The translations under genes and the position numbers were made by a program. This document shows positions 22,008 to 64,000 of a stretch of DNA of 64,000 bases, piece after piece. The first letter of the stretch is position 1. Every line of letters starts with the position of its first letter. Source of the stretch: Macrostomum lignano (taxonomy: Eukaryota); assembly GCA_002269645.1 (NCBI GenBank), contig NIVC01000604.1:186001-250000 (forward strand), given 5' to 3'. Below the pieces are notes generated by a model. That model ran no database searches. It was not told the origin of the DNA and saw only the letters and a list, made by a program, of their open reading frames with translations.

Positions 22008-22138
22008 TGTTGTTTTTGAGAATGGTTAATTGCCATTTTCATATTATATTTCTTTGGTGATTAGGTTGAAAGAATTGAAAAACGAATAGTAATTTCTCGA
22101 AACTGCATTAGACTTTAAGGCTGGTAATTAGGTACGAT

Positions 22139-23884: not shown

Positions 23885-23965
23885 CTTACTTTACATGGTA
23901 GAGCAAAGATTAGGAGCGAAGACAGTCAAGAAAAAAATGGAACCCGCCACCGCTAATATTCCCAG

Positions 23966-24086
23966 GTTCAAGGAGGAATTGGCGGCCGCCAGCGCCAGCA
24001 TCAAATCGCGCAACAGCAACCGCGACCCGGTGTACCTGTACACTGCACTGGATCCTGAGCGCATGCTGAATCACCTGGTTGTGTGA
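23966..24086 (+). CDS. Lipoxygenase-like gene, terminal exon 6
   Basis: CTAAT branch-like site and TTCCCAG| acceptor. Translates (E)FKEELAAASASIKSRNSNRDPVYLYTALDPERMLNHLVV*, a LOX C-terminal pattern. The six exons sum to 2070 nt = 689 aa + stop. Confidence 0.88.
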
Positions 24087-30800: not shown

Positions 30801-31057
30801 TCATGAAGGTGGAATAGATGCTTGGATAGAGATCATGAAGGCAGGAATAGATACTTGGATAGAGATCATAAAGGCAGGAATAGATACTTGGATAGAGATC
30901 ATGAAGGCAGGAATAGATACTTGGATAGAGATCATGAAGGTGGAATAGATGCTTGGATAGAGATCGTGAAGGTGGAATAGATGCTTGGATAGAGATCATA
31001 AAGGCAGGAATAGATACTTGGATAGAGATCATGAAGGCAGGAATAGATATTTGGATA
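27885..31057. repeat. 33-bp minisatellite (GATAGAGATCATGAAGGCAGGAATAGATACTTG) with shorter variant units
   Basis: Tandem array; source of the DRDHEGRNRYL / WIEIMKAGIDT pseudo-ORFs. Confidence 0.97.
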
Positions 31058-36449: not shown

Positions 36450-37343
36450 ATCTGAGATCTGGGATCTGAGATCTGAGATCTGGGATCTGAGATCTGGGAT
36501 CTGAGATCTGGGATCTGAGATCTGGGATCTGAGATCTGGGATCTGAGATCTGGGATCTGAGATCTGGGATCTGAGATCTGGGATCTGAGATCTGGGATCT
36601 GAGATCTGGGATCTGAGATCTGGGATCTGAGATCTGGGATCTGAGATCTGGGATCTGAGATCTGGGATCTGAGATCTGGGATCTGAGATCTGGGATCTGA
36701 GATCTGGGATCTGAGATCTGGGATCTGAGATCTGGGATCTGAGATCTGGGATCTGAGATCTGGGATCTGAGATCTGGGATCTGAGATCTGGGATCTGAGA
36801 TCTGGGATCTGAGATCTGGGATCTGAGATCTGGGATCTGAGATCTGGGATCTGAGATCTGGGATCTGAGATCTGGGATCTGAGATCTGGGATCTGAGATC
36901 TGGGATCTGAGATCTGGGATCTGAGATCTGGGATCTGAGATCTGGGATCTGAGATCTGGGATCTGAGATCTGGGATCTGAGATCTGGGATCTGAGATCTG
37001 GGATCTGAGATCTGGGATCTGAGATCTGAGATCTGGGATCTGAGATCTGGGATCTGAGATCTGGGATCTGAGATCTGGGATCTGAGATCTGGGATCTGAG
37101 ATCTGGGATCTGAGATCTGGGATCTGAGATCTGGGATCTGAGATCTGGGATCTGAGATCTGGGATCTGAGATCTGGGATCTGAGATCTGGGATCTGAGAT
37201 CTGGGATCTGAGATCTGGGATCTGAGATCTGGGATCTGAGATCTGGGATCTGAGATCTGGGATCTGAGATCTGGGATCTGAGATCTGGGATCTGAGATCT
37301 GGGATCTGAGATCTGGGATCTGAGATCTGGGATCTGAGATCTG
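36450..37343. repeat. (GATCTGGGATCTGA)n 14-bp repeat built from a 7-bp dimer
   Basis: Nearly perfect array. Confidence 0.98.
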
Positions 37344-38014
37344 GGGAAATCTTCAAATCGGAATATTGGGATTGCAATCTTAGATGACACAGGCGGTCTG
37401 TGTTTCTGTAGTTAAGAAAAATAATTGTAAAAAGCATTTTACTTGTGAAAACAGCAGAGTCAGTAACTGACTGCAGCGGCACCCACCGCAGAAGTTCCGC
37501 ATTTTTCCCCAATTTCGCTTTCAATTTTCCGTGTCGGGGCTTTTTGCCTGACGAATTGCGGTGGAAATCTCTCAAATGGGATTCGGCGCGAACAGCAGCA
37601 GTGATCCCAGAGGCCATAAGATTTCACTCCGCCTCGGTGACTGCCGCGGTGCGGTAGGTCCCTCCCTCCGTCTCCCTACACCTGCTCCTCTTTGTGGCCT
37701 AAAAAGTGGCGCGCCTAAAAACAACAAAAATCCAACTTCTGGCTTCGGTTTCGAAATTGATGAAGCGGAGGCTAAATTGTAACGATCGCCGCGGAGTGGC
37801 TGGTGTGGAGTGGGGAAGATTATCCCCAGCCCTCCGCCCCGACGCGGTCGAGACTTTCTGCGCCGTTTCCTAAGATTTTCTGTCTTTAAAGAGCCGGCCA
37901 CCCTCCCCCCCCAGTCGACCTCCCTAGTGACAAGTGGCCCAGAAAATTCTTGTTGCTTTCTGCTGTCGCCGCCACAACAGTCAGGGGACTTCACCTCTTA
38001 ATTATTCTGCGAAT

Positions 38015-44707: not shown

Positions 44708-45636
44708 TAAGGGTCAGCAGAAAATTTGTGACAGTCAGATGGCTCCCAGTCAAACGTCAGGTTCCTTGCTTTGGTTTGAGTTAAAAAATCTGCGCCGGAT
44801 TTTTGAGTGAAAATCCCTGCCTAAGGGATTAGGATGGACTATGGGAGATTTGAGAAGCTGGAAATTAACGAGCTGGAACTCGGTGAAGCTGGGGACACGC
44901 GATGACGTGATGCAATTTCCAAGACTCATACAGCGTCTGTTCCATTGCTTCCGCTCTGCTCCCTTCCCCTTTGAGGATCGAAGATCCAACGATTCTTAGA
45001 AAAGGAATCCTTCAGTATCAATGTCCCCTGGAGCAGATCAGTTCGGCGATCGGGGTCCCGATCCCGTCTGTGAGCTGTGGTCGGAGCGGCACCATGAGAT
45101 CACACAATGGTACTCGACCACGCGATTAGGAAAGGAAGATGCGGAGCGCGGGGGACGGCCAGGCTCTGCAGCCGAGCTAATGACATGGGCCAGTAAAACA
45201 TAGGAAATGCAAACACAAACAGGGCATAAATTTTGCAACTGACTTTATACCAGGGGGTCTGCGCAGCGACATCGGTGAGAAAGTTCCCCCCAGGTCGCGC
45301 TTTTTTTGACATTACAAGCCACGGTTGAAGCGTTATTAACATTGAAGCTGGCAGAGACATGCAAAGGTAGTTCGGCATGCGGACCGGCACTAAGGTGGGG
45401 CCCAATGGGTCGCTCACTCCGAGGGCCACAGAGCCAAGATGAAAATTGCGCAGAAGATTGCCGAGCAGCAGAGAGAGAGAGAGGGGGACGGCCCGAATTC
45501 TAAGGTAGAAACCACACAGGGCATGTGGCACCCTGAGTGTTAAGTGTTGGCATGAGTGCGGACTGCAGTCAGGTAGGTTTGCGTAATTGCGCAGTGTCAA
45601 CCGCTTTTGCCTTTATCTTTGGACTGGGCGTTCCGG

Positions 45637-46117
45637 CTTCTGTCAGGACTGTCTCAGGAGCTCCTCAGCTACACCTGACCGTGTCCTTCAGGCTTCTGTC
45701 AGGACTGTCTCAGGAGCTCCTCAGCTACACCTGACCGTGTCCTTCAGGCATCTGTCAGGACTGTCTCAGGAGTTCCTCAGCTACACCTGACCGTGTCCTT
45801 CAGGCATCTGTCAGGACTGTCTCAGGAGCTCCTCAGCTACACCTGACCGTGTCCTTCAGGCATCTGTCAGGACTGTCTCAGGAGCTCCTCAGCTACACCT
45901 GACCGTGTCCTTCAGGCATCTGTCAGGACTGTCTCAGGAGCTCCTCAGCTACACCTGACCGTGTCCTTCAGGCTTCTGTCAGGACTGTCTCAGGAGCTCC
46001 TCAGCTACACCTGACCGTGTCCTTCAGGCATCTGTCAGGACTGTCTCAGGAGCTCCTCAGCTACACCTGACCGTGTCCTTCAGGCTTCTGTCAGGACTGT
46101 CTCAGGAGCTCCTCAGC
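45637..46117. repeat. 56-bp tandem repeat (CTGTCAGGACTGTCTCAGGAGCTCCTCAGCTACACCTGACCGTGTCCTTCAGGCAT)
   Basis: Period 56 (45641 to 45697), about 8.5 units. Confidence 0.95.
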
Positions 46118-48739
46118 TGTTCCGTCTTGATTCCATCTTATTCTTTGACTCTTTCCTGCTGGCTCTCCCTCATCAACCACCTTCGCTCTCACCAAGTCTT
46201 CCCTGTTTCTTTCTCTACATCTTTATTTTCATTCTCCCTCCCTGTTTACTTCCTTTCCGTTGCTCCCACCTTCAATCGGTTGCACAGCCTTCCCCCATTC
46301 TCGCCTGCAATTTTCTATTCCCAAGACGACATGCTGGAGGTCCAGTCTGAGCTGCAGGAAGCGGGGGGCCCGGCACCCTCTACTCGGTCAAGCAGCCGAC
46401 GGAGCAACAAGCTAAAATATATTTTTGCTATTCCAACCGGAAGTTCGGCTTGATACCCGTGTGAAAATTTCTGGGACAGGAAAAGCCCAGCGCGACTGCC
46501 ATGAGTCTTCTTCTTCTTCTTCTCTCGCTCTCGCTCTTCTCCCCCGACGCTGGGGCATAAAAGGCGGGCCTCAAACTCGCATTTGCTGCAATGCTTTTAA
46601 GCCTGCCAGCTCATCGCGTCTTTTGTGGATGCCAGCCAGTCACTCTGTGTATTATCCAACCTCTGCAGTGCCATCAGGCTGGGGGCATTTTAAACCCGCC
46701 TGGCATGGAGAGCAGATTCAGGTTTTATACAAAAGACGAACTGGCAGTGGGTATTTACCCTGACAACAAGACGCAGCCTCCCCCCCCGTCTGGCACAGCC
46801 GGCCTGCCGTGCATCCGATATCAATAATTGGCACAGGCAAGGCAAAGATGCAGCTATTAGTTGGAAACTGGCTTACAGGATCAGGTTGAGATTCGGATAC
46901 CTTTTTAGTCGTTTTGGGAAGAAATAGAGAGAGAGCGCGAGAGACAGAAAGAGGATTTCTGCTTCTTAGCCGGCGATTCCGCGAAGCAGCAGAACGGAGC
47001 CTTGGGATGACAGCGGGGATGGCTGTCAGCTGAGCCAAGGCCTGGGCGCCGGGCCTAAAAGGCAGGATTTTTCTAAAAAATGAAAGGATCTCTGCATGGG
47101 GAGAAGCGGCTGCGTGACAGTGACAGCTGGCCTCCCCCCCCCCCCCGGCCTCCCAAATTCACCGTAGCGGGGGGGGGGAGGCTGCAGCGGCAGCAGGCAG
47201 CATGCTGCAGGCTGGGCTCACCTCGGACTTCCCAAAGCACTAACTCTCTCTCTCTCTCTCCTCCCCAGCCCCAGCGGCCTCAGCTCCCCTGTCCGAGACC
47301 GGAGCCCCAACTGACAGGGGAGAAACCGAGGGGTTTGGGCTGGGAGAAGCAGCCAAGGCTTGGAGGGCTTACAGAGGATCTGGAACGAATTGGCACGAAT
47401 TGGACGAAAACAGCAGTGAAGGGATAAAAGAGTCTGCAGGACTGACCGGCAAATGGGCAGGACATTTCTGGGGTTCTGAAGTGACTTCCATCATTGCTAA
47501 ATTGTCTTGCCGTTTGTATTTCTCAAGCGGCTCCTACTCTCTTCTGGATTCTCCCTGCCAGGTCTCTGTCTGAGAATGGATGCACCTGATGTCACCTGAC
47601 CGCGAATTCAATGCCACCTCGTCAGCTCCCTTCGATAGGTCTCTCAACTGCCAAGAAAGCTGGGCTCTCTGTGGAACCATCTCTGCGGAAGATCTTCTCC
47701 TAGAAGCAAGGCAATAGGGGACACCCCACTCCCACTCAGCCGTCTATGCCGCCGCCGACTCCCCAGGGGGGGGGGCGCCCCGCCGAGCTGGGAGTCAGCA
47801 GTTAAGAGAAACATTAGGATGGAACACGGGAGGAGCTAAGGAGCTGGGACAAATGAGGGACAGGAGCAGAATGGGGCTGCGTGCTGGGCAGGGAGGGGCG
47901 ACAGAAGGGGCTGAGGGCGAGGAACCCAAATGGCCCCCGGTTTGACAGATGACACTGACAGATAAGAGAAAAGGCGGCTTTGAATTCTCCAGCCTTGCAG
48001 TGCCCCCAGGTTTGGGTGGTGGGGGCGGGGAGACGGCTCTCGGGCTCGCGTGCTGCCCCCCCCCCCCCGTGTCCCGTCGCTCTTTGACATGCCAGCTGTC
48101 GGGCTACAACTGTCACCCCAGCCTGCCCTGCCGAGCCGCACACTTAGGGCCGAGACCCCCGGGGGGTCGCCTCTCGCTTCAGCGACATCCATTTCTACTG
48201 ATCTATCAGGCCCTCTGCGGCCCCCGTCGCTAACAAGCCGCGTTCCCCGCCAGACCGGCTCTCCCCTCCCCTCTCTTGGCCGGTTATCACTTTAATCGCA
48301 TAAATAAATCCCCCCAGCTAAAGAGGGGCTTGGAACCCTCCAATTTTCCCATTGGGCGGCTGGGCGAAATCTTGTTGACACTTGGCCCCTTATCCTTGGC
48401 TGAAATCGCTGCTAACAGTGGGTGGGGGGAGCATCCGGCAGACAGCTTTCGGATGTCCGTCTTTGCGGGGCTGCATGGCAGCAAGGCTTGGGGCAGAGGC
48501 CGGGACTGCTTGACAGGGGCACCTGGTGCACTGCGACAGCTACTTCTAATCCTGCCTGTCTCTTCCAACTTCAATGCCCTTTGACATGCTGACTGTCTGT
48601 CGCTGTTTTTCTGTTTCTACTTTAGCCCTGCTGCTACTGCCCTTGCTGTGGCATTCAGCCTAAGCCGGCAAACCCCGGCCTTTGGGTGCTTTCATAATAG
48701 CAATCCGGCCTGCTCAAGGCTCGTGTCTCCTCTCAGCTC

Positions 48740-49320
48740 TATTCTCTTCTCACTTCTGTTCTCTTCTCCTCTCTCATCTTTTCTCTTTTCTTTCTTTTCT
48801 TCTCTTCTCTATTCTCTTCTCTTCTCTTAACCGTTCTCTCCACTTTCCTCCATCTACTCTTCTCTTCTCTTCTCTCCTCTTTTCTCTTCTCTTCTTTCTT
48901 CTCTCCTCTTGTCTCTCCTCTTGTCTCTTGTCTCTTCTCTCTTCTCTCTTCTCTTCTCTTAACCGTTCTCTCCACTTTCCTCCATCTAATCTTCTCTTCT
49001 CTTCTCTCCTCTTGTCTCTCCTCTTGTCTCTTGTCTCTTCTCTATCTTCTCTCTCTTCTCACCTCTTTTCTATCTTCACCTCTCTCCTCTTTTCTCCCTT
49101 CTCTTCTCTCTCTCTCTTTCTTCTCCTCTCTCCTCTCTCCTCTCTCCCCTCTTCTCTCATCTCTCTTCTCTCTTCATCTCTCTTCTCTCTTCTCTCTTCT
49201 CTCTTCTCTCTTCTCTCTTCTCTCCTCGCTTTTCTCTTCTCTTCTCCTCTCTCTTCTATTCTCTTTTCTCTTCTCTCTTCTCTCCTTTCTTCTCTCCCAT
49301 CCATCCTCTCACCTCCTCTC
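48740..49320. repeat. Polypyrimidine (CT-rich) low-complexity tract
   Basis: Almost entirely C/T on the + strand. Confidence 0.95.
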
Positions 49321-49744
49321 GACATTAATTAAGAGTAGCCTTGTTGGAAAGCTTTCTGGCTTCCGGATTACTTTTTCTTTGCTGCTTCTGGGCAATTTCA
49401 CAATTCTGCTTTTCTACTCGGACCTGTTTTTAAGCGCATCGCAGCCGCACTAAAAGAGAACTTTCCCACCGTCGAGCAGAGCAGAAGCAGCAAGTTGATC
49501 TGTTTTCTGTCAACAAGCAGAACTGGGGCGCGAAAGACCGCCAGGCCTGATGGACAGATGTTTACTGGGGATAACCAGGAGGGCCCTGGGTCAGCTGGAT
49601 CGGATCAGCTGCCTCACTTTGCCAGTTTCTCTGTGGTTTGAATGCATCTAGATTTTCTTCGAAACACAGAAGCAAACTGGAATATAGTTAGTATTAGTGT
49701 CCGTCTGTCTCACCGTCCGTCTATCCGTCTGTACGAGTGTATGT

Positions 49745-50204
<460 letters not shown>

Positions 50205-50236
50205 TGCAAGAGTCTCCAACCGATTGGCATTCGCAG

Positions 50237-51793
50237 ACGAGCCGCAACGGCCTGGCCGATGAGGCGGCAGCTTCAGAAGACGAGGAAGCAGCTGGCAACG
50301 CGTCTGCCGCATCCGCTGCTGCGGCTGCCAACAAGTCGCCTGAATCCCCGGTGAACTTGGACACAAAGTCGGCACCGGCAAGGCGCAAGCGACCTGCGAA
50401 CGAGTCGCCCGCCAGGCAGCCGCACAAGCAGCAACTGCAGAAACTGCGGCAGCAGCAGCAGCAGCAGAAGCGGCGTCACCTGCCGCAGCCGCTGCCCCTG
50501 ACGCCCCCGCCGCGGCCAGCGCTGCCTCTGCAGTCACCGACGCCGATCTCCTCAACTGAGCGCGTCACCAACGGCGGCGGCTCCGCGCCCAACGTCAAGG
50601 TCGAGGAGCTCGCCGCGGTCAATTCCGGTGATGAAGTCGATGAAGAAGACTTGGAGGAGCTGGAGGAGGAGCTCGACGAGGGGCCCGACGCGCTGAACAA
50701 CCACTCCGGCTCCGAGGACACCACCGAGTCGGCCGGCGGCTCCGACGGCTTTCTGTCCTACGCAGCCGCCGCCGCCGCCGCAGCCTCCTACCCGGGCTTC
50801 CCGTTCTTCAGCGGCGCCCTCGGCCCGATGGCGCTGCACCACTCGTTTGCCGCCTTCGCTGGCCAGGCGGCCGCTCCGCTGTTCTTGCCGCCGCCGCCGC
50901 CGCCTCCGCCGCCCCCGCAGACTACAGGCAGCGCCACCACCACCAGCAGTCTGGAGCTGCTACGCAAGAGTTTCCAGCCGTCCAAGTCCAGCGCATTCCA
51001 GACTCCGTCGCATCCCTCCCAGCTGCCTCAGCCGCTCACGCAGTCGGCCTCATCCTCCTCGTCGGCAACCTCCGTCGTGGCCTCCGGTGAAGTGGCTGAC
51101 GCAGCAGTCAGGGAAGCCCAGCCGGCAACAGACAGTCCCGGCTCCGATGCCGGCGTGGAAAATCAGCATCAGGCGCAGCTTCTCCAGCAGCGACATCGTC
51201 TGCAGCACGGATCCGGCGTGTCCGCGGCTGCCGCTTCGCCGTCCTCCGCAGTTCTCGGCTCTTCGCCTTGCAGCGGCGGCGGCGGTGGCGGAGGCGGCAG
51301 CGTCGGTTCTCTGCGCCTTGACTGGTGCTCCATCAAGCGGGGCTCGCGGCCCAACCTGCCCTACTCGGCGCGCAGGAAGCTGTTCCACTGGCTGGCCACG
51401 CACCTGCACCAGCCCTACCCGTCCGAGGAGCAGAAGGAGGCCCTGGCCAGGGACACCCAGCTGACCAAGACCACCGTGAACAACTGGTTCATCAATGCCC
51501 GACGCCGCTACGTGAAGCCGCTGCAGGAAGGCCGCACGGTGCCCGGATTTGATCTCTACCGGGTCGCCGGGCTGCGGTCTCCGGAGCCGCCCTGCTCTGT
51601 CGACAGCAGCGGCGGCGTCATCGGCGTTGGCGGCGTCGGCTCGACTTCGCCCGACTCCGCGGCCATCTCCGTGTCGTCTCCCCCGCCGCCGACGCAGCAG
51701 CCGCCGCTGCCAGCACCGCCGCCGCAACAGCAGCAGCCGCAGCTTCCTACGGTGATGCCGCTGAGCGAGAAGCTGGAGCCGAGCACGCCCTGA
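50237..51793 (+). CDS. Terminal exon of a TALE-class (Meis/Prep/TGIF-like) homeobox gene
   Basis: Homeodomain at about 51335-51520: [62 protein letters not shown], with the PYP loop and WFIN-ARRR. Acidic and poly-P/A/Q low-complexity flanks. Likely acceptor TTCGCAG| at 50236 (phase 0); stop at 51791-51793. Confidence 0.92.
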
Positions 51794-53204
51794 TGATGAG
51801 GAACTTTTTCTGAGCTCAAGCCTGCAGCGCGTCTGCTTCTTTGATCAGAACGGTGGCTGTTTTGCTGGGTGAAATGAATTAATTCAAGTCAAAGCGGGAG
51901 ATCATTATTTAACATTCGCGCCAAAGTCTTCAATTAACCCCCATCCCCGATGGCTGCTTCTGAGGTTGCCAGAAACCCAGCAGCCCAGTCTCTCTGCCTC
52001 ATCACTTTTCAATAAGGACTGCCAGGGCGGCAACCTGTAGCGCTCTCTGCAGCAATAACCTGTTGCATTTGGTTGGCTCTAAGGTGTACAGCAAATTCAC
52101 TTAGGACCCAAATTGCTGTTGGACACCATCTTGACCCACGTTGACCTTGGCTGTCCAGACATTTGTCAGTCCGCTCCTCTCCTGAGCTCAAATCTGCAGT
52201 TTCTGCCACAGCTGAGTCGAAAGTAAATAAAGTATTCCAGTGCCGCAATAATTGCTGCTTTCGCGGCAGCAAAAATAATAGCAATTTTTCGGATTTCCCT
52301 TGTCAGTATTTGTCACGTTAGACCCGCCGCTTACTACTGCGACTAGTGTGCAATGCATTCTGCCTGCTCCCCCTTATCTATATTCGCACTGCTCAGCTGT
52401 TTCAGAAATCATGAAAAAAATGTCAGAAAAACGCCTGAAGGCACCCAGTAACAAGCTGAATTTCTGCTTTCTCATTCTGTTTTTTCCTCCTACTAATTGC
52501 GGCAATTTTCCTTCCGTAATTCCGCCGTTTGTTTCTGTTTATCGGTTCTGTTGACAACAAAAAATAAATATTTGAACGCGCGAGTTTCGTACATACTACT
52601 TACTAGCGCCAGGCTAGTAGCAATAAACGTAAATAATTCTGAAAATTGACTTTAAAATATTTTTAACAAAAATGTAAGGAATCGGATGGGTAGCCACTGA
52701 AGGATAGCTGGAGCTAGCAGAGAGCACTGAGATAACAGAGAGCAGTGAAGTACAATATTGGAGATGGTAATGGTAACTTCTAGTGGCCCTTGCTTCAAGA
52801 AACTTTTTTTTAGATGAGAGCGTTCAAGATAAATAGGAAATCACGAATCGTCCCAACTGTAGTTCCTGCAGCTCAGGTCAGGTGACAAGGCCGCCGATCA
52901 ACTCAAATCAACTCGATCAGCTCATGCGCTACCTTCGAGCCACACGCAGTAAATTCAAAACCGAAGAACCCACCTGGACGGCACGGCAGCAACCCCCCGT
53001 CCATAGCGACGACGCGTCGGCCGTTCAGTAATTAGCGGAATGGGCGTCCGTGCCTTCCCGCTGTGTCCCCCCGGGACTGCCTTGTAAGTACAGTAAGTCA
53101 AGTAAGTCAAAGAGTCAACTGCAAGAGCAATGAGCATATTAGGCCCCAGCTACTAGCATATGCAACTTCAAGCTTGTGACTGTAAGTATTGAATAAGACA
53201 GATT

Positions 53205-54049
53205 TCTCCTGCAGAGGACGGCTTTCTACTGCAAAGGCGCACCGGTCGGCGACACCCGGAGAAGAGGCTGTCCCTCCTCGGCTACGCGGACGACCTCGCC
53301 CTGCTGTCCACGACGGTCGAAGGCGCCCAACGGCTGCTGGATGGCCTGACTGTGGCGGCTGCGAGGTTCGGCCACGTCATCAACGCCAAAAAGACCGAGG
53401 TGCTGACGGTGCCCCACGATCTACCCACCGAGATTCGACTCAGAGACGGCGATGGCCCTGGGACGGTGCTCCCGAGGTGCGCTCAGTTCCTCTACCTCGG
53501 CGGGCTGGTGCCGGACGTCAGCGACGATCTGGCGAGATGGCGCGGCAAGGCCTGGGCCGCCTTTCGATCTGTTCGGGCGGTGCTGCTCTCAAAGGCCCTG
53601 TCGGTCAGCGCCAGGTAACAGCTGTTCCAGGCTGTTGTTGAGACCGCTCGACGCGGCGCATGCGGCTCTGGTTCGTGCCGCGTTCGGCGCCCGCCGCGGC
53701 CCCGGCAGCGAGACGACCGACTCCCTGTACCAGCGAGCGCGCCTGACGCGGCCTTCTGTCCTGCTAAGCAAGCGACGTCTGCGGCTTGCCGGGCATGTCA
53801 TCCGGGCCGAAGCCTACTGCCCAGAGCCGCTGCAGGACGCCCTACTGGGGACTCCGCAGGGACCGCGCAGGCACGGACAGAGACGAGCGGCTCGCTATAT
53901 CGACCGTCTTTTCGATGATGCGCGAGCCCCCAGCCAGGCAGCCGGCGTGAAGCACGTCAGAGACCTTGCCCTGAAGCGCGCGATTTGACGCCCCCCCCCT
54001 TTGGCCAGTTGTGTGTTCGGCGCGAGGCGTGACATTATTATTATTATTA
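53205..54049 (+). mobile_element. 5'-truncated non-LTR retrotransposon (RTE/RTEX-like), 3' half of RT with (ATT)n tail
   Basis: LGYADDLALLSTTVEGAQRLL...FGHVINAKKTEVL...FLYLG...RGKAWAAF...RRLRLAGHVIR, with frameshifts. (ATT)n tail at 54034-54049. Confidence 0.9.
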
Positions 54050-54668
54050 GATTCCTCGGTTAGTATGAATAGTTTCCTCTATTGGTACTCGTAGATGCCC
54101 AAGTTAGTGGAATGGGCAGCAATGCCTCTCGCCGGTTGTGCGACAATATTGCTTAAAGTGCGCCAAGGTGCACACAGTACACAGTCGCCTTTAATAAAAA
54201 GCAATTTACCGGTAGGAGCTAGCAGAGATCTCTTAAGTACAATAGGGATAAGCAGAGACCTTGAAGGAAGTCGGACTTGGTTTCAGACCAACTAAATTCC
54301 ATGCAGGAGCTTGGCAGCTTTCTTAGAAAGATACTTATTTGGTGTTACGCCTTTCCATAATATAGGGCCTAAGGTATTTGCTAACGAAGTCAGCTGACCT
54401 CCACCAGCGGTACTTGATTAATTTTCTTCTGAAGAAAATGGGATTAAAATGGCAGAGTTTAGTCTCAAGTCGCATTGGTCTGCCAAAAGTAATTGCTAAC
54501 TCGGTCTGTTTAAACAGTGTTGACCTTGTTTCTATGAGCAAAGCGGCGAGAACAAAGGAAAATACAGATGTTTAAATAGCAATTATTGCAGACATCAATT
54601 TGGAACGAAGGGCGAGGGAGCGAGAGGAAGTTGCACCGCTGGCCCGCAGAGCCTCAATTAGCCACGCT

Positions 54669-54740
54669 CTGATAAGCCGTGCGCTGATAAGCTGGGCTTA
54701 TAAAATGCAAAGTCGACTGATGCGAAGCTCACTCAGTCGC
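54669..54740 (+). promoter_or_regulatory. Candidate core promoter of the neuropeptide gene (2x GATA site, TATA box, Inr)
   Basis: CTGATAAG twice (about 54669 and 54685), TATAAAA at 54699-54705, TCAGT at 54733-54737, about 90 nt before the ATG. Confidence 0.55.
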
Positions 54741-54822
54741 TGGAAGGCTACGATTGTCAATCAGAAAGTTCCCAGTCTTAGTTGAGCAGAGAACTTTAAA
54801 AAATTCTACTGAAGGAAACTTC

Positions 54823-55095
54823 ATGCCAGCTTTGATGCATCTTCGAGGCGCTCAGCTGCTGCTGCTGCTACTGCTGCCGATTCTGCTGACGGCTTCGCCG
54901 GCCGCTCATCCGCAGGCCACCGCGCCCAGCCCGCGGCAGGTCCTGGCGCACCATCCGCCGCAGGGGCCGGTCCCGGTCTCGAATCCCTGCCCGAAGCCGA
55001 AGCCGCCGGGCAGCGAGAAGGAGCTCCGGGACTACTTGAAGTGCCTGGAGAAGTACTTCGATTCTGAGAAGGGCGGCTGGTGGGGCCGGCGCTGA
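54823..55095 (+). CDS. NPY/NPF-fold neuropeptide prohormone, divergent (GGWW-amide)
   Basis: Hydrophobic signal peptide ([17 protein letters not shown]), Pro-rich segment, then helix SEKELRDYLKCLEKY with Tyr at -17 and -10 from the amidated end, then G-RR-stop. Confidence 0.82.
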   Translation: MPALMHLRGAQLLLLLLLPILLTASPAAHPQATAPSPRQVLAHHPPQGPVPVSNPCPKPKPPGSEKELRDYLKCLEKYFDSEKGGWWGRR

Positions 55096-55887
55096 TAAGA
55101 GAGAAACTCGGACAGCCTCAGCGCAGTAATGCTATATTCCTATATTTCTCTCGATATTATATTTTCTTGCAGCTGTCGCTACAGAGTTTTGCGCAAGACA
55201 GGAAAAACAAACATTTTAAGACTTCGAGATAAGATTCCGTAAACTAATTCTTGATCAGCGTTTGCAATATATTTAATGAAAAATACACGTGTCAACGCCA
55301 TTCTCACCATAATGGTAATCTTCGTTGGAATAACTCGGTGATTAATTATTTGGGCTCTAATTGCAATAATTGACAGGCCATAGTTAAGGTACTAACCTCT
55401 CATCATCAGTAGTACAGTCACATGATAAAGAAACGAGGATATGCCACGCGGAGACTATAAACATATGGTTAACAGAACGATAAGAAAACAAGGATATGCC
55501 AGTCTGAAAAAAGGCATATTAAAAGTCTACAGATTGATGTTCGGTGCAACACGCATACATTTCTACACACTGATAGCGCAGAGAACGGTCGGATAAAATA
55601 CAAGGACCAAACTGAATGCATGTATAGATCGGCGAGTTTTATCAGTTGATCCTTCTATCCGTCTGACTGCATTCCGAAAATAAGTTTGCATTCAAGTCTG
55701 GTAAATTTGGAGAAGAAAAGAACGGGTAATTATCAATTGTATCGAGGATATACCTTATTCTGCATTTTGACGAAATTCTTGAAATTTAATATTGATTTTA
55801 CTTTATTTGTTTTATGCTCAAAACCATAAATATCGCGATCGGAGTCATCCCCGGCTCATTCTAAACTTCTATAAACAACAACAAATT

Positions 55888-57050
55888 ACGCAGCCCTGTG
55901 AGGATCTGTGTCAATGTACCGCGTTGCTGCCGGAATCCGTTCTGCTCGTACCGCAGGTACGGGTCCAGCACCGACTGCAGACGATCGAGCAGCAGCCGGT
56001 TGAAGAGCTTTGCGGTGCAGGACATCAGCGAGATCCCGCGGTGGTCTTCTTTCCGCGTTGTCCCTGCATTCTTCGGGATCGGCACGATGTGCGCAATTGT
56101 CCACTCGGTGGGCGCAGGAGCGCCGGCGAGCACGCGGTTCATGACGCCTGTGACCTGGGAAGTCACACAGCGGAGCCGCAGCGCTTCGACTGGGACTTCG
56201 TCAGGGTCGAGCGCCTTGCCGCCTGATGTTTTCCGAACGAACAGCACAACGTCCTGGGCTGGTGACTGGGCTGGTGCAGAAGTCCTCCTCAGCTTTCTGC
56301 GCCCCGTCAGAGTCCGGACGGCCGTCCACACTGCGTGGCTCTTCACGTCGGGGCCGGCTGCAGTGATGGACCTGACGGCGTCGTCGACAGCGGTCTGCTG
56401 CCGCTCTTCTAGAAGGCGCTCAAACGCGTCTTCAGCGTTACCCGTGGGCCACCGTTTCTTCGGAGTCACTCGATGTTGCAAGCCGTGCTTGCCTGATGGT
56501 CGGGTCGACCCGCATCAGTCGCAGGAACAGCGAAGCGCAGTGCACGCTCTGCCGAAGGCGCGGTCCGCGGTCGTCTGCGAACGTGTACAGGAGGCTCCAA
56601 CCGTCTCCAAAGGTCCTCAAAGTGGAGCACCAGCTCAGCCACGATAGAAAACCTCGTGCAGAATGATAAGGTCCAGATGTAGGTCGTGGGTCAGCTGGAC
56701 GAGGATCATGCGACACCAGGGGGCATTAGAGTTCGGCAGTTCATCGTGCCGAGTCTAAGGCGTCCACCTGGTACAGCTGGGGCCAGATGAAGGTTGGCCT
56801 CATGGTCCCCGGCTCCACCCGGCGGATCCATAGTTGGAGTTGCAGGGACTCGGGGCAACAGGCGCCTGACCGCGACACGGAGTAGCCCTCGCCGGTTGCG
56901 CTCGCGCTGCCGTTCAGTGCGACGTTGCGCGCTGCGCCGACCTTTGCGAGTCGCTGCTGTGCTGAACTTTGCTGCCGCAGCCGAAGCGCGGCCGTCCGAG
57001 CCAACCGAGGTCATCCGCGGCCTGATGATCTGGCCGCGATGCCAGGTGTC
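55888..57050 (-). mobile_element. Internally deleted non-LTR retrotransposon, 5' part (APE N-terminus and first RT motifs)
   Basis: RLGTMNCRTL (APE start), then GKALDPDEVPVEAL...WTIAHIVPIPK...DHRGISLMSCTAKLFNRLL...EQNGFRQQRGT. Confidence 0.9.
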
Positions 57051-57827
57051 AGCACTATTGCACGGGTGTGCAAATATAATGGTTCTAGTGTAATTCTAAA
57101 CTTCTATGTAATTAAAACACGAGTGCGTTTTTCTACATGTATTCCGTACAAAAAAATTCGTTACGCATGATGAGAACTTTAAGAAGTTGAGAGAAAATAA
57201 TTGAGAGAAGAATTTTTTTACCTTTTAAACTTTTTAAACTGAGCGCATACCTGTCAATTCGAAAGTCAGGGCCGCTCTTGTACACCCGGCAGTTGTGTAA
57301 TGTTAGTGTGAGTTTGAGTGTGAGTCGTCTCTGAATTTAAAATTTGTCCGTCGATAAATTTAAATTAACGTCGTCCGTCGGACACATTAAAAACATGTCC
57401 GTCGAGGTCAGTAGTGAAAATAATCGTTGTGATTTCCGAAAAGAAACGTGCTCCGTTCGCGGTAAAATTGTTAGTAAACTATTATTATTTCATTAGGATA
57501 AAAATAAAAATTTCAAATGCATTTTTGAATTTTTATGTCAGTTTTATTTGCAATTTTAATATGAAGTCCTGCAGTAGTTGTTATATGCATTGTGTTCAAT
57601 TCAATTGTCGAGAGAGAGAGAGAATTCCTCACCAAGCACCAAGTTCCAAACCCACAAATTTATATGTTCATTCTAATGAAAGATCTATTAGTATTTGAGT
57701 CAAAGACTTGATTTTTTGATAGCTTAGACTATAAATCTGCTAAAACTTTAAAAAATTATTAATTTAATTTTAAATGTTTCAAAACTATCTTTTCTTTTGT
57801 GTGCTTACACCTGTATAACTTTCACCA

Positions 57828-58008
57828 ACACATTTTCAGACACATCTTCCAACACTTCTTACAACAGTTGAAATGTTGCAAAAAGTGTTGGAAAATTGTT
57901 ATAACAGTTAACTCTCGTTGACACATTTTTAGACACATTTTCTAATTACCTTTCATGACAAATTTTGCAACATTTTAAGTATCAGAAGATGTGTCTGAAA
58001 AGTGTGTG
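57828..58008. repeat. Imperfect inverted-repeat element (MITE-like)
   Basis: CACATTTTCAGACACATCTTC ... GAAGATGTGTCTGAAAAGTGTG, plus an inner AAATGTTGCAA / TTGCAACATTT pair. No TSD identified. Confidence 0.5.
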
Positions 58009-61000
58009 CAAAAAAACAGGTATTTGTCACAATCTTGGCTCTTATTAATTTAAAGTCCTATTTAACCTTGCATTTATTTAAGCCCAAAGTCCAATTAATT
58101 GTTTTAAGCTTCTTAGGGCCCAGAGGAATCTCTAAGCCCAGTCACCAATCACTTTGGCGACAGGTCAAATTTTTTGCCAATGAAACTTTACAATTATACG
58201 TCGTAAAAGCAAAACAAATTTAATGTATATTTAGATATTTAGCTAGGTATATTTATTCTCAATTTAATAAGTAGAAGGCGGGGTTAACAAACACAAGCTC
58301 TAGTGGGGGGTTGTAAATGTGCATGCATTACTATGTACTCGTACATTAACCAATCAGAATGGGGGTTCTCTTTCTCTTTCTTTATTTCTGAGTAACACAG
58401 TGTATGTGCCTATATATGCCAATATGCCAAATAAATTTATAACAATACTTACAATACTATATAATGCAAGTCAATTCATTTTGTACTTTATTGTATTTAT
58501 CGTAAGCATTCATAACAAAGTACAGAAAATTTGTGTTGCTTTTTTAATAAATCCAGATAAATCACACTTTTTAATCATGAAGTTTCATTGGCAACAAATA
58601 TGTCCTTTAGCTGTTATTAATTGTTGCTGAAGTGATCCAAATGTGTTGCTGAAATGACTATTGCCAAAGTGACTGTCGCCAAAATGATTGTAATTCCTAG
58701 GCCTTACCCCACTCTCCTCCCTTAACTTCTAGTTCAGTCATTTTAGTTTTCAAAATGTACATTGCTTAGAAAGATTTATATCTGAACCAATAAACCCCAA
58801 ACCAAATGAGGGAATGAGGGATGACAATGACAAAAGCATTTTTTTCATATTGATGCACTAAGCCATTCTGCTTCATTTTTTAAACCAGCCTTGTCCCTGG
58901 CTATTCCAAGGTTAGGGGCCTTCTCTAAAATAAATGTGTCAAAGGGCTAACCTTTTGTCTTTATAAATATTAGTAGCTGCCATCAAGACTATTCTATTAA
59001 TAAATTACGAGTTTATTATTATTAGAATAAGTCTAAGTATATATATGAATATTTGTCTAAGTATATATTTTTGAGTATTTGTTTGAGTATATAGTGTGTG
59101 AAGTGTTTTTAGAATATCTTTTTAGCCCTTACAAGTATCATTTTTTGTTATTCTGGTAGCATTTACTATTATTCTGGTAGTATTCTAGTAATTTGGCCTG
59201 AGTAGTATATTGGCTTACTGGTATATGTATTGAATGTATTTCCAATCCTGGGTGTTACTGAGATCAGAGGGTCATAGCCTCCAGTTATTCTTACATATAT
59301 CAACTTAGGATCTACTTTGTTTCCTCTCCCACTCCTTGCACTTCTCAGTAGTATCTAATGTATATACTTTGGTCTATTTCACTTTACTTTAGAAAAACAA
59401 TTAACTTGGAAAACACTTCTTAAATATTTCTTGAACAACTCACTATTATATGCTTCACTTATTAGTGCTGCTTTGTAGCTTAAAACCGCAAACCAGGTTG
59501 CCTCTTCTGGCTCCAAAAATGCATCTATTTATACTAATTTTCATTGTTGTTTATAACAAAAATTAAATTGGAAAAATAGTTAGAAAATCATGAAAAGTAA
59601 AACAAAAATTATTGCATATATATAACAATGTTAGATTTCTTTTTTCACAGTGAAATATAAGCAGTCCAACATGATTTGCTTTAAGATGAGCCTAGTCTTA
59701 AGGTTATTAAGACCAGTTTTAGAAGCAAGAAAAAAGAATTTTAATCAAGAGTAGAACCTAAGAAGATACCTATTGAGTACCTTAGCTTACTTCCAGGCAT
59801 GAAAATATAGATATAGCACTGCATAGCTGAAGGGAAATACTTTCAGTCAATAGTGAATATTTATATAATAGTTGCCAAGTATTTTAGTGCCTATGCTTCT
59901 TGTTATCTGGCATTTTGATTTGATTTGATTTTTTATTTGAATTTAATTTTTCTTTGAGTGCCTAATATTTTAAAATAAAAAATTAATAACTTCCTAATAA
60001 AAATTAATTCAAGGATTTTAGTTGAATTCCTTAGAACCCTATCTTGATTAAAACAAAGTTAACACTAGTAAAGGTAGACATCTACTATTTATTGTTTTAA
60101 TAATAAAATATCTTATTAATAATACTCTAATAGGCCTACCTACTAAAGTACTAGAAGAATTTTTGAAATTTGGGTATATAAATTAGTTGTAGTTTTGATA
60201 CAACCATAATTGTTTAAATTTTTTTGACATTTGCTTCAAATTTAAGTTTGATTTTTTAGCTTCCATCTAACTATAAATAGCCAACCACTAGGGGGCATGG
60301 AAAATAGAAGGTTTTAGGGTAGGGATAGTTTTTATAGGGATTAATTCTTAATTTCTTATTGAAATTAAATAAAATTACCCGAAATTTAATAGAAGCATGC
60401 CTAATCTATTATAAAATTTTAAAATAAAATTTAAAATATATAAAATTTTGCCCTAATTAAATAAAACTTAAATTTCAAATCAACCTATAAGAACCCCCAT
60501 AGAAAAGAAATTATAGTCCTTTCAAAACTAGAACTATTTTTACCTAAACTTCAATAGAGACTTAATTAGTATACTATTGAAAATTAGATAGATTAATTTC
60601 TAAAATATAGAAATTATGTTTTATATTTATATATACTAGCAAATTATAACAGTTAAGTGATTAAAAGCGTGATTAAACCAGACTGGACCAAAATTGATTT
60701 GCACTTAGTATTGTACAGTTTTCATTTCCTAAATAAATATATATAACATGGTTCTGTGTGATTAATTGACATGTCTGCCCTGAAAGATGACTGTGGTCGA
60801 AATGCATTGGCAAAAGTCTAAGAAACTAAAATGTTGATTTTGAGTTTTCTCTACTTAATTGTTGTCAAGCAAGCAGCCCTACCAAAGTTAAGTTAATGGT
60901 AGTCATAAAATAAGCTATAGAATATAAGTAGCACAATAGCAAAAGTTAGCTTGCCATTATTAGAAACAGATTAGTAAATATATTAATATCAATAGATAGT

Positions 61001-61292
61001 ATAGAAGAGTTAGTTACTATTAATTAATATATTATTGATGATTTATAAAACTAAATTAGTTGGCAAGAAATGTTGATAAATATAAAACACAATCCTAGCA
61101 AAAGTATTAGCAAATCAAAAAGTGGAAATCAGCAATACAAATTGTGATTAGAATGACAAATGTATATGCCAATGATAGATCCAGGTAGAAGGCAAGAAGG
61201 GTGGCTGTCCACTACTTTTGCTATGGCTGGACTTTGGTACTTTAATTTCAGGATTCTATTCTACAATATTTTTATTGCTTTTATGGTTTGTC

Positions 61293-61493
61293 CAGGGACA
61301 ACTAAAACACCGGGATGGGAAACTGGAGATTTTTATGAGGCTGGTCTTTTTAGCAGCAGTAGAAAATAACCATAGACAACAAAGTAACACAGCGTCGCTC
61401 TAATGAAAATAAGCCAACAAGCCTCGTCAGCTGCTAAAGACCAGCCTTGTAAAAAATTCCTAGTTTCCCGTCCCGGTGTTTGAGTAGTCCCTG
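61293..61493. mobile_element. hAT-type MITE (201 bp) with ~65-bp imperfect TIRs and 8-bp TSD
   Basis: Termini CAGGG...CCCTG. Identical flanking GGTTTGTC at 61285-61292 and 61494-61501. Confidence 0.88.
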
Positions 61494-61900
61494 GGTTTGT
61501 CTTTGTCTGTTTGCAATGTGTCTTTTTTCTTGGATTGTAATAGAATTTCATCAAAAATAGGTACTTTCCTACTAGAACAGAGATGCAAAATCAATAATTA
61601 GTCTTAGTCAAAGCAGAAATTGGCTAGTATAGTATATAAGTGTTATTGTATAGGCCTATTCAGAGCAAGCATTTGAGGAAGGCCCCTCTCATTTTATGTA
61701 CGAAAATCCTTTGTTGGTATGCATTTGCGCAAAACAAAGAAAAACTTTTTGTCATTTTATCATATGTAGCAGTGCTTGTATTACATGTACTATGTTGACT
61801 CACTATTGATTTCCTAGATTAGTTCATGCGCTTACAGTGAATCATATTCATATAATTTGAGCATCTAGACTTATATTTTGTAAAGAGGGTCCTGTATTAC

Positions 61901-62116
61901 TGTAGTGAGTTGCAAGTGTACTTGTATGCGCCAGTCGCTAGAGTGGGGTGGGGGTTGCTATTGTACAGCATGTACGTGCTTTTCACCCACCCCTGTCTCT
62001 ATCTTTTATACCCAGTTATGTAACAATCGTTGTATCGTATTTAACCTGCGTATCGATCTAATAAACGCCAAGAGGCTTCGTCAACTCTCAGTTGTATCTC
62101 TCTGCCTTAGTCTACA
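61901..62116 (+). mobile_element. 5' LTR of a Ty3/Gypsy element
   Basis: TGTAG...CTACA termini, AATAAA at 62060, followed after 2 nt by a PBS. Confidence 0.88.
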
Positions 62117-62118
62117 AC

Positions 62119-62129
62119 TGGTAGCAGAG
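62119..62129 (+). other. Primer binding site complementary to the animal tRNA-iMet 3' end
   Basis: TGGTAGCAGAG is the reverse complement of CUCUGCUACCA. Confidence 0.9.
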
Positions 62130-62143
62130 CAAATTATTCTAGA

Positions 62144-62952
62144 ATGGCTGAGAAAGGTTTGACCGCCAGTGCAGCGCTGCCCAGAGTTTTCAGTACCGGC
62201 AACTTTAAGGAATGGCTGCAGCGTTTCAATGTATGCGCAAAAGTCAACAAGTGGGACACGTGCAAAGCGGAGCGACTGGCCACATTTTTGGATGGCGAGG
62301 CTCTCGTCGTTTATTTGGAACTGTCGGCAGGAGATCAGGCAGACTACGACAAAGTAGTCCAGGCATTGGATGATGCATTCCACCCGAACCGCGAGCACTT
62401 CGCCGTCATGGAGGCGTTCAAATCAAGGAAGATTTTGTCGAATGAGACTCCACGCATGTATCTTTACGAGTTAAAGAAGATGCTCAAAAGCTCCTCCGTG
62501 GACAACAAAGATGCTCAAGAGGCTCTGCTGTTCCATCAGTTCGTCTGTGGCCTTCCCGAATCCGTGAGCTGGCAGATTCGCGCGGACTCCAGCGTTAAGA
62601 CCTCAGAGCAAGCGCTTCAAAAGGCCCAGCTACTGATGCAGCACAGCTCGCCAAGCATCCCAGCAGCAGCGGTGCAACCTCAGTCGAGCCAATCCAGCAA
62701 GTTCAGGAGCTGCGGGACACTGTGCAGAGTCTGCAGGCATCGGTGAGCACCCTGAGTTCCCAGCTGCAGCAGCTGGCAGCCTGTGGAGTGAGGACGAGTA
62801 GCACAACGAGACCGCAGCACCGTTCGAAGTCTGACATCATCTGCTACAACTGCCACAAGGCCGGCCACATTGCCAGAGATTGCTACAGCAGGCGACAGCC
62901 GGGAAACGCCAGAGGCTGGGGTGTGCGGGCCCGCAACCCCGGCCAGCAGTAA
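62144..62952 (+). CDS. Gypsy gag with CCHC zinc knuckle (one internal frameshift near 62695)
   Basis: FKEWLQRFNVCAKVNKW...LATFLDGEAL...Q-RQ/ETPRMYL region, then CYNCHKAGHIARDC in the adjacent frame. Confidence 0.9.
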
Positions 62953-62962
62953 CTGCGGGCCC
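62901..62962 (+). other. -1 ribosomal frameshift signal: G GGA AAC slip site plus H-type pseudoknot
   Basis: Heptamer at 62901-62907 in the gag frame, 6-nt spacer, stem 1 62914-62922 / 62936-62944, stem 2 62927-62935 / 62954-62962. Confidence 0.85.
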
Positions 62963-64000
62963 AGCAGCAGCGGCTTCAAGGCCGGCGCTCACAGTCGGCG
63001 GGATCTTCGACGGATGCAGCGTCGCGCCCGACCGACTATCGCAGTGTGAGTGCAAGCTTGATGGCAGAAGTGTGAAGGCGCTGTTAGACACCGGAAGCCA
63101 GTGCTCACTAGTTGAGTCCAGCATCCTGACAAAATCCCAGCTCAGACAGGCAACTGCAGCCAGAGTGCAACTTCATTCAGTGAACAAGCAGCCAATTAGC
63201 ATAGAACGGCAAATCGAATTGCCACTTACAGTCGGTGGAGTGACAGCCCGGCAATTGTTTTTCGTTGTGTCAGGTTTGGTCTGCCCTGTCATTGTTGGAG
63301 TCGACTTCATCGGCAAGCATAATTTGCAACTGGACTTCACAGGATCTTCACAAGAAGCCGGCCAAGTCTGCAGCACCAGATTCCAGGCTGACACCGACGA
63401 TCCAGTTGACATCGAAGACGCACTCGTCCCCGAGTTCAGCTGTGAAGAGTTCGAGTTGCCGACTACCGACGACCCTGATGTACAACGGCTGCTGGTGGAG
63501 TTCAAAGACTTGTTCAAGAAAAAGCCGGGACTAACTCATCTGCAACAGCACCGAATTGTTCTCTCGGATGAAGTACCTGTCCGAGTGCCACCGCGCCGAA
63601 TGCCTGTGCATTACCGGGAGAAGGTAGAGCAGCTGATTCAGGAACTGCTGGAGAACGACGTGATAGAGCTGAGCGAAAGTCCGTACGTGGCCCCACCGGT
63701 GTACGTGACAAAGAAGGATGGCAGTCTCCGCCTGACCATAGACTATCGAGAGATCAACAAGAAGACTATTCGCTCTGCACAGGGAATTCCGTTGATGGAG
63801 GAGGCAAGAGATCGAATCGCAGGCAGTTCAGTGTTCTCTGTGTTGGATCTCAATGGAGGCTATTTTCAAATTCCGATGGCAGAAGAAGACAAGCTAAAAA
63901 CTGCTTTCTGTCCGGGACCAGGGATGCCGCTGTACCAATTTAAGAGAATGCCCCAAGGTCTGTCGGGGGCCCAAGCACATTCTGCATGCTAATGTCAAAA
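62901..64000 (+). CDS. Gypsy pol (protease and RT N-terminal part); runs off the window
   Basis: ALLDTGSQCSLV protease; KKDGSLRLTIDYREIN; FSVLDLNGGYFQIPM; YQFKRMPQGLSGA. A 1-nt deletion near 63970 shifts the expected GAPSTF. Confidence 0.93.

Follow-up and report, generated by a model that had tools for sequence, protein, structure and literature searches.

Here we describe Mlig021254, an open reading frame (ORF) of the flatworm Macrostomum lignano that probably encodes an atypical prohormone resembling neuropeptide F (NPF), of the same superfamily as neuropeptide Y (NPY), and whose only relative recovered by a protein database search is a secreted protein of a marine bacterium. The ORF lies, with its stop codon, at positions 54823..55095 on the plus strand of a 64,000-nucleotide stretch of contig NIVC01000604.1 (assembly GCA_002269645.1, positions 186,001 to 250,000), hereafter the window, whose numbering is used throughout. 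The gene probably acts in the manner of NPF and descends from it, while membership of the family is not demonstrated. The proposition as a whole, namely that Mlig021254 is a genuine, transcribed, intronless gene for a secreted prohormone-like precursor with a divergent member of the NPF/NPY superfamily at its core, is in our judgement evenly balanced. The link to NPF is probable though not proven, and the most economical account of both proteins is an NPF-derived animal family of which one member has reached a host-associated bacterium.

Results

Precursor layout, predicted processing and predicted structure

The precursor reads, in order, as a signal peptide, a proline-rich spacer, a CPKPKPP arm, an amphipathic helix (ELRDYLKCLEKYF) and the motif SEKGGWW, followed by Gly, Arg-Arg and the stop. 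Its N-terminus (MPALMHLRGAQ, seven Leu, PILLTASPA) combines a basic n-region, a hydrophobic run of Leu and a Ser-Pro-Ala ahead of the cut, and a signal peptide is predicted, by eye and with the -3/-1 rule, at Met1-Ala27 (54823..54903, plus strand, as for all the features that follow). The spacer, Ala28-Pro55 (54904..54987), is rich in Pro, Ala and His, holds a sole monobasic site, Arg38 (54934-54936), directly followed by Gln39, and is without equivalent in the bacterial homologue. The 32-residue core, Cys56-Trp87 (54988..55083), is the part conserved with that homologue and comprises the CPKPKPP arm, a turn, the helix and SEKGGWW; it reads C56-PKPKPPGSEKELRDYLK-C74-LEKYFDSEKGGWW87, with the two Cys codons at 54988-54990 and 55042-55044. 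Gly88-Arg89-Arg90, read as an amidation donor and a dibasic site, and the tandem stops TGA TAA complete the arrangement (55084..55098), and there are no internal dibasic sites in the precursor.

Counted back from the last Trp, Tyr stands at -17, Leu at -13, Tyr at -10, Phe at -9 and the two Cys at -32 and -14, the latter pair corresponding to positions 5 and 23 of NPY. An earlier, sequence-only reading of this DNA had given the spacing of the Tyr, Leu and Cys residues and placed the peptide at 54973-55092; translation reproduces that segment exactly, and every count is correct. Its proposed 37-residue mature form, starting at Pro51, is not supported: there is no cleavage site at that point, the likely cut follows Ala27, and Arg38 is the only basic residue between this cut and the core.

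In the worm, the signal peptide would be removed after approximately Ala27, and a further, monobasic cut after Arg38 is possible, leaving Gln39 able to become pyroglutamate. A prohormone convertase together with a carboxypeptidase would take off Arg-Arg, and Gly88 would be converted into a C-terminal Trp-amide, giving a mature product of 49-60 residues and not one of 36-37. A pc2 homologue occurs in M. lignano (PMC4490696). The Gly-Arg-Arg-stop, standing in the NPF register, still predicts amidation in the worm, in which case the receptor-activating octapeptide of NPF (…GRPRF-amide) would be replaced by DSEKGGWW(-amide), and we conjecture a receptor other than the canonical NPY/NPF receptors that recognise RxRF/Y; a different receptor or an antagonist role had been suggested in the sequence-only reading. 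Cys74 is at i+3 from Tyr71, on the face formed by Y71, L72, L75, Y78 and F79; this hydrophobic face would pack on the proline arm bearing Cys56, and a disulfide between Cys56 and Cys74 could staple together a hairpin resembling the pancreatic polypeptide fold (PP-fold). We know of no PP-fold peptide in which the fold is held by a disulfide.

AlphaFold2, run on a C-terminal 46-mer, returned a mean predicted local distance difference test (pLDDT) score of 69.7 and a helix at residues 21-39, equivalent to precursor residues 65-83 and to NPY residues 14-32. The predicted amphipathic alpha-helix, Glu65-Lys83 (55015..55071), carries the NPF-like segment that is also picked out by the profile alignments described below. 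Block-mean pLDDT was 80-88 over residues 11-30 of the 46-mer and approximately 80 over residues 11-20, arm included, and the models of both the worm and the bacterial protein place a non-helical arm ahead of the helix at moderate confidence (block-mean of roughly 73-89 over the first 20 core residues). The predicted layout fits the PP-fold pattern, as the sequence-only reading had supposed, with a helix in the position expected from NPY; a Foldseek search of the predicted model against the PDB gave no match.

Likeness to the NPF and NPY peptides

Similarity to known peptides was assessed against a set of database NPF/NPY sequences supplemented with ten planarian npy precursors (Collins et al., PMC2953531). 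With a hidden Markov model (HMM) of lophotrochozoan NPFs, the ORF ranks first among the 1844 six-frame ORFs of the window (16.7 bits, E 5.5e-4), the runner-up scoring 6.3 bits; the 46-mer reaches 19.1 bits, a score equalled by none of 5000 shuffles (top shuffle 4.4). A general NPF HMM gives the peptide 16.0 bits, again with no shuffle as high (0/2000). Profile-profile comparison by hhalign of the two-member family, worm and bacterium, with 15 NPF/NPY peptides yields a probability of 89% (P 2.4e-6), and the flatworm protein alone one of 86%; the matches are short and helical, spanning 22-23 columns with P values from 2.4e-6 to 4.8e-6. The alignment, PKPPGSEKELRDYLKCLEKYFD with PREFRHPNELRQYLKELNEYYA, is gapless, and the distance from the conserved Tyr to the C-terminus is exactly that of NPF. 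On these comparisons the likeness to NPF is beyond chance, sub-threshold yet reproducible.

The known peptides that come closest are those of other flatworms. Flatworm NPFs and the planarian npy products are likewise made from a precursor with a signal peptide, one long peptide and a Gly-dibasic site, a layout found here in full (the signal peptide as judged above), and the precursor of Smed-npy-10 ends …PRYGKR-stop much as Mlig021254 ends GRR-stop (PMC2953531). They also share a Pro-rich segment ahead of an amphipathic helix, and the flatworm NPF signature of Tyr at -17 and -10 from the amidated end is present with the helix motif in register, Tyr -17 and the aromatic pair at -10/-9 being at the same C-terminal distance on both sides. 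Smed-npy-1 is among the closest known flatworm npy members, and the closest motif matches, npy-11 (EIKDYLHHLNLYF) and the NPF of Moniezia expansa (LRDYLRQINEYF), share with Mlig021254 the helix motif E-[LI]-[RK]-D-Y-L-x-x-L-x-x-Y-F. The planarian has eleven npy genes, one of which, npy-11, is called an 'atypical neuropeptide Y': it has 46 residues, reads …DEIKDYLHHLNLYFQIVSRPRL-amide and ends in RPRL-amide (Collins et al. 2010, PMC2953531), indicating that flatworm members may be 46 residues long and may lose the C-terminal aromatic.

Differences are concentrated in the C-terminus and the cysteines. The last eight residues of Mlig021254, DSEKGGWW, stand against x-x-x-G-R-P-R-F/Y/L in flatworm NPFs and lack Arg at -2 and -4, and its two Cys are absent from all the NPF/NPY peptides aligned here. 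Among vertebrates, NPY, peptide YY (PYY) and pancreatic polypeptide (PP) are alike in the predicted polyproline arm, turn, helix 14-32 and aromatic spacing on one helix face, but end in RQRY-amide, which Mlig021254 does not. The Wamides (MIP/allatostatin-B, APGWamide-type and molluscan WWamides; PMC7270403) have only the predicted terminal Trp-amide in common with Mlig021254: they are short, usually present in many copies per precursor, and have neither a polyproline-helix domain nor a Cys pair, in contrast to the one long peptide here. The W(x6)W pattern of MIPs does not occur in Mlig021254, which thus falls outside the definition of the Wamide superfamily, and no sequence relationship to Wamides was seen. 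The literature searched contained no GGWW-amide or similar peptide, which agrees with the suggestion in the sequence-only reading that the peptide is undescribed; this is provisional, the main flatworm catalogues (McVeigh 2009, Koziol 2016) lying outside that search.

A single relative in a marine bacterium

A phmmer (HMMER) search of 1.84 billion cluster representatives recovered a single relative, WP_440994039.1 (P0002), a 75-residue hypothetical protein of Cysteiniphilum litorale (E 1.9e-5, 41 bits), with the sequence MSNQVKKIIIGTTTVIISTMTVNTAFA|SYPLCPKPTPPVSIQDLKNYVNCLNEHYHSEKGGWWSDIRVKQNINIL. It aligns with the worm core over 32 residues without gaps at about 55-56% identity. The 18 invariant positions comprise CPKP.PP, S, L, Y, CL and SEKGGWW, both Cys included; the Cys pair is 17 residues apart in the two proteins alike, and the Tyr spacing is also kept. 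Worm and bacterial proteins are both secreted by prediction, both carry CPKPxPP, L..Y..CL and SEKGGWW, and both are modelled by AlphaFold2 with the same arm and helix. We define a mini-protein family, C-x17-C-x6-SEKGGWW, by a secretion signal, a CPKPxPP arm, a Cys pair 17 residues apart, an L..Y..CL helix and SEKGGWW, all of which are found in Mlig021254 and WP_440994039.1, its two members. Judged from this alignment, homology between the two proteins is secure, and SEKGGWW is their most conserved element. A homologue with conserved Tyr and Cys spacing, of the kind whose absence would have counted against the sequence-only reading, thus exists, but it is bacterial and its GGWW is internal.

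The bacterial gene has a ribosome-binding site and encodes a Sec signal with an AFA|S cleavage site, so placed that the mature N-terminus is four residues ahead of the first Cys; its GC content, 35%, is like that of its surroundings. It is located on a 44-kb contig (JBPXJY010000023.1) between a C39-ABC/HlyD/RTX secretion cluster and the genes plsY, fpg, holA and pheST. It is divergent to the genes for a C39-peptidase ABC exporter and HlyD-type adaptors and for an RTX-type repeat protein of >2000 residues (positions 1-10700 of the bacterial locus, L003), and is followed by a 111-residue ORF with a weak match to a phage tail-fibre chaperone domain (Peptidase_S74, E 0.0076); two nearby genes, of 271 and 302 residues, belong to no family and have a lower GC content of 30-33%. 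A double-glycine leader, considered on account of the neighbouring C39-peptidase exporter, was rejected: the signal is a standard Sec one, and the residues ahead of the Gly-Gly are off the leader consensus. The genus Cysteiniphilum lives in coastal seas and is related to Francisella; it has an open pan-genome and many mobile elements, and has been tied to wound infections after shrimp punctures and to coral disease.

Bacteria do not have the animal amidation machinery. Conservation of SEKGGWW at an internal position in the bacterial protein therefore cannot be explained by amidation there and must reflect structure or binding, and an amide-centred interpretation of GGWW is weakened by the bacterial copy. 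No further bacterial relatives were confirmed in a pattern scan of 185,579 species-representative bacterial and archaeal genomes, nor were relatives in JGI metagenomes or viral contigs in similar scans, all of which catch fairly close relatives only. A tblastn search of plasmids gave non-significant matches only, and the best-covering of these, from Burkholderia gladioli, proved unrelated and has no Cys.

The bacterial protein by itself also resembles NPF. Against the lophotrochozoan HMM it scores 12.3 bits, a value reached by none of 5000 shuffles and the best among the 457 ORFs of its locus, and the match is in the same register as that of the worm (QDLKNYVNCLNEHY with eeLrdYLrkLNeYy); hhalign gives it a probability of 43% against NPFs (P 2.5e-4). 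With a wider HMM, built also from vertebrate and insect peptides, the bacterial protein does not stand out (3.6-4.8 bits). The residues behind the matches to lophotrochozoan NPFs are partly different in the two proteins, with ELRD…YF matching in the worm and LNE.Y, which is missing from the worm, in the bacterium. The presence of the related gene in C. litorale most likely reflects an exchange between a bacterium and some animal lineage, and the direction from animal to bacterium is favoured, given that WP_440994039.1 is a singleton among bacteria and is itself NPF-like. In base composition each gene matches the genome that carries it, and any transfer would thus not be recent.

Gene, promoter and transcript model

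The frame of Mlig021254 (its GenBank transcript-cluster locus tag) is complete and open for 90 codons, from the ATG at 54823 to the tandem stops TGA TAA at 55093-55098. It contains no intron: the frame is continuous and the annotated coding sequence (CDS) is a single range, which bears out the absence of the NPF intron claimed from the sequence alone. A TATAAAA box (54699..54705, plus strand) is situated 36 nt upstream of the A in an initiator-like TCAGTC (54733..54738, plus strand), which, from the sequence and the start of the RNA-derived CDS, is the likely transcription start. That CDS is 5'-partial and begins at 54739, and an in-frame TGA occurs at 54718-54720; the RNA behind the model must consequently begin at 54737-54739, which is 2-4 nt past the A of TCAGTC and 38-40 nt past the first base of TATAAAA. 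The gene models of the NIVC annotation rest on RNA-seq and on a transcriptome assembled de novo, with TransDecoder, and those that were non-coding or overlapped repeats had been filtered out (PMC5730564), so that a transcript underlies the Mlig021254 protein model PAA47850.1. The ORF has a GC content of 67.8% and a GC3 of 82.4% between flanks of 37-44% GC, and the neighbouring TALE-homeobox exon has 64.5% GC and 73.2% GC3; the codon bias of the ORF is thus host-like. From these features we conclude that Mlig021254 is a real gene with its own predicted promoter.

Two CTGATAAG motifs of GATA type (54669-54676 and 54684-54691, plus strand) precede the likely transcription start by approximately 45-65 nt and may have a regulatory role. 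There are three such sites in the 64-kb window, all at Mlig021254, the third overlapping the stop codons (55089-55099 region). The 11-mer GCGCTGATAAG is found without mismatch at both 54681 and 55089 and so brackets promoter and ORF. These repeats could be GATA-factor sites, the relic of an insertion, or chance, and the position of the GATA-type motifs beside the TATA box is a hint of gut expression that proves nothing. A retrogene with the flanking 11-mer as its target-site duplication was considered and found unsupported, the segment having no poly(A) tract and carrying its own TATA box inside.

Mlig021254 is present as three near-identical copies on three contigs of GCA_002269645.1, consistent with the redundancy already known for the M. 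lignano assembly (PMC5730564). Our working locus L002 equals window positions 44739-64000 at 100% identity. The copy on NIVC01000149.1 differs from that on NIVC01000604.1 by one synonymous change in the ORF; that on NIVC01004311.1 (L004 10001-10360) has one extra Leu codon, eight in place of the seven at window positions 54856-54876, and the length of the CTG/CTA run that encodes the poly-Leu core of the signal peptide accordingly varies among the copies. The GenBank model, PAA47850.1 ('BOX15_Mlig021254g2, partial'), represents the NIVC01004311.1 copy. The suffix 'g2' numbers near-identical copies of one transcript cluster, and a polycistronic unit with the homeobox gene, to which it might have pointed, was rejected. 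An exact-sequence look-up in the protein collection returned no record of the 90-residue protein, and apart from NCBI gene models that collection contained no transcript-derived protein, from Logan or elsewhere, for Mlig021254. No paper found in the literature search names the gene.

Genomic surroundings

A large, GC-rich exon with a TALE-class (Homeobox_KN) homeodomain (49697-51793) is positioned 3 kb upstream on the same strand and adjoins all three copies of Mlig021254. Just downstream of the gene, the segment 55858-57107 contains a fragment of a reverse transcriptase (RVT_1; ORF 55861-56481, minus strand, Pfam E 2.5e-6). A perfect direct repeat of 15 nt, ATTCTAAACTTCTAT, flanks this fragment at 55858 and 57093, and the segment resembles a non-LTR retroelement (LTR, long terminal repeat) inserted in truncated form, with the repeat as its target-site duplication. 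An LTR-retrotransposon pol ORF, with an aspartyl protease and the start of a reverse transcriptase, extends over 62880-63992, approximately 10 nt short of the right-hand edge of the window.

Elsewhere the window is rich in repeats. A satellite at 15700-24000 consists of monomers of approximately 470-535 bp that are 64-76% alike, with every fifth monomer 98-100% identical, which makes a higher-order unit of 2537 bp repeated at least three times. Minisatellite arrays occupy a large part of the window (2133-5658, 23 bp x155; 9346-10411, 29 bp x37; 12328-14401, 16 bp x130; 25511-26915, 23 bp x62; 27881-31057, 33 bp x97; 36450-37345, 14 bp x64) and yield many spurious long ORFs, and an interstitial telomere-type TTAGGG run of 7.7 copies is found at 6518-6562. 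Among the arrays, an ORF at 11405-12208 matches the lipoxygenase domain (Pfam PF00305, E 4e-26, profile positions 192-441 of 673) and probably represents a single exon from a lipoxygenase gene.

Discussion

The sequence-only reading had named an NPY/NPF prohormone. The layout, the C-terminal register and the likeness in HMM and hhalign comparisons uphold this, and several observations weigh against it. The Pfam profile PF00159 (Hormone_3) scores 13.3 bits on the precursor (E 0.088) and 15.1 bits on the 46-mer (E 0.025), over profile positions 6-27, and its gathering cut-off of 28.7 bits is not reached. The RxRF/Y-amide end is replaced, as had been noticed earlier, by K-G-G-W-W ahead of G-R-R-stop, and no relic of RPRF is present in any other reading frame at the locus. 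Mlig021254 lacks the conserved intron that interrupts the penultimate Arg codon in NPF genes; of the 11 genes in the planarian npy set, 10 have kept this intron in the Arg codon, with npy-11 among them (Collins et al. 2010, PMC2953531). Many of the NPF/NPY database fragments in our set (P0005, P0006, P0014-P0033) end exactly at …RPR, …RQR or …RVR and thereby show a conserved intron before the last residue in molluscs, insects and vertebrates. The similarity itself extends over some 22-26 residues only, within an amphipathic helix that contains many E, L, K and R residues, and the lophotrochozoan HMM was built after the hypothesis was in place. The family HMM recovered no NPY, PYY or PP chains in a sequence search of the PDB, the Foldseek search described above was equally empty, and NCBIfam gave nothing useful. 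A homologue in flatworms or other animals was not found in databases where animal sampling is thin. In the bacterial protein GGWW is followed by 12 residues (SDIRVKQNINIL) and by no Gly-dibasic, and the assembly copies are uninformative on selection, with one synonymous difference in the ORF and flanks equally alike. Since three features that define NPF fail (the RxRF/Y-amide, the intron and the Pfam threshold), we use the label 'atypical NPF-like' and not that of a proven family member.

Several other explanations would account for parts of these data. One, which we rather doubt but regard as a serious rival, is that the stapled mini-proteins form a family unrelated to NPF, that the worm copy came from a bacterium and later acquired a signal peptide and a promoter of eukaryotic type and, by chance, Gly-Arg-Arg, and that the likeness to NPF is convergence on a fold of polyproline arm and amphipathic helix. 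This would suit a family whose sole significant homologue is bacterial, whose similarity between worm and bacterium (41 bits) far exceeds that to any NPF (13-19 bits), and in which the bacterial GGWW is internal; the worm gene is, moreover, intronless and flanked by retroelement fragments, and neither Pfam, PDB sequences nor Foldseek provide a significant match to NPY. A native bacterial family should, however, have relatives, and the bacterial gene is a singleton in the database search and in the scans described above. Both proteins match lophotrochozoan NPFs in the same register through partly different residues, the Gly-dibasic-stop of the worm falls exactly at the NPF position, and the own-genome base composition of each gene implies that any transfer is old. 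That the product is secreted but not hormonal (an antimicrobial, gland, adhesive or seminal-fluid mini-protein that acts through a folded, Trp-capped, disulfide-stabilised core, Gly-Arg-Arg being incidental) seems to us unlikely. Retention of SEKGGWW in an organism unable to amidate it, the lengthy N-terminal extension of the worm peptide, rich in Pro and free of dibasic sites, and, more speculatively, GATA-type motifs that could mean gut over neuronal expression are in keeping with such a product. Planarian prohormone genes are active outside the central nervous system too, for example in the intestine and pharynx (PMC2953531), and the site of expression alone therefore cannot decide between a hormone and a non-hormone. 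Against a non-hormonal role stand the classical single-copy prohormone layout, as in Smed-npy-10, and a C-terminal register equal to that of NPFs; no cationic or amphipathic excess of the antimicrobial type is evident, and no family match suggests another function.

The least probable explanation by far, a functionless chance ORF or transcriptional noise, draws on a region full of retroelement fragments and satellites, on assembly copies that are silent on selection and on a protein collection in which only gene models represent Mlig021254. It sits poorly with a 32-residue core that is gapless in a bacterium (E 1.9e-5 against the whole library), with a GC3 of 82% amid AT-rich flanks, with a TATA box and an initiator-like motif correctly spaced from the start of the RNA-derived model, and with a GenBank set that leaves out non-coding and repeat-overlapping models.

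Returning to an NPF-derived animal family, a fuller scenario may be offered, tentatively. Mlig021254 would represent a lophotrochozoan NPF offshoot, disulfide-stapled and GGWW-ended, in a basal flatworm; a version from an unsampled marine invertebrate would have been captured by Cysteiniphilum litorale, where it is Sec-secreted and may act as a mimic of a host peptide; and the worm peptide would found a new class of ligand with its own receptor, SEKGGWW being the shared functional epitope.

If this is correct, an NPY/NPF scaffold has kept its polyproline-helix body, swapped the whole of its receptor-binding end and gained a covalent staple, a natural experiment that would tell the fold-bearing part of the peptide from the signalling part. 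M. lignano, a model for transgenesis and RNA interference, would gain a tractable orphan ligand. Were bacterial origin and convergence to prove true instead, the gene would be a clear example of an animal that has domesticated a mini-protein of bacterial origin as a secreted peptide. A neuropeptide-like family shared across kingdoms would, if true, be far more notable than a divergent NPF-like gene alone: the bacterial relative, from a marine species able to infect or colonise invertebrates and now and then humans, would rank among the few candidates for a neuropeptide-like gene common to animals and bacteria, in which microbial copying of host signals is directly testable.

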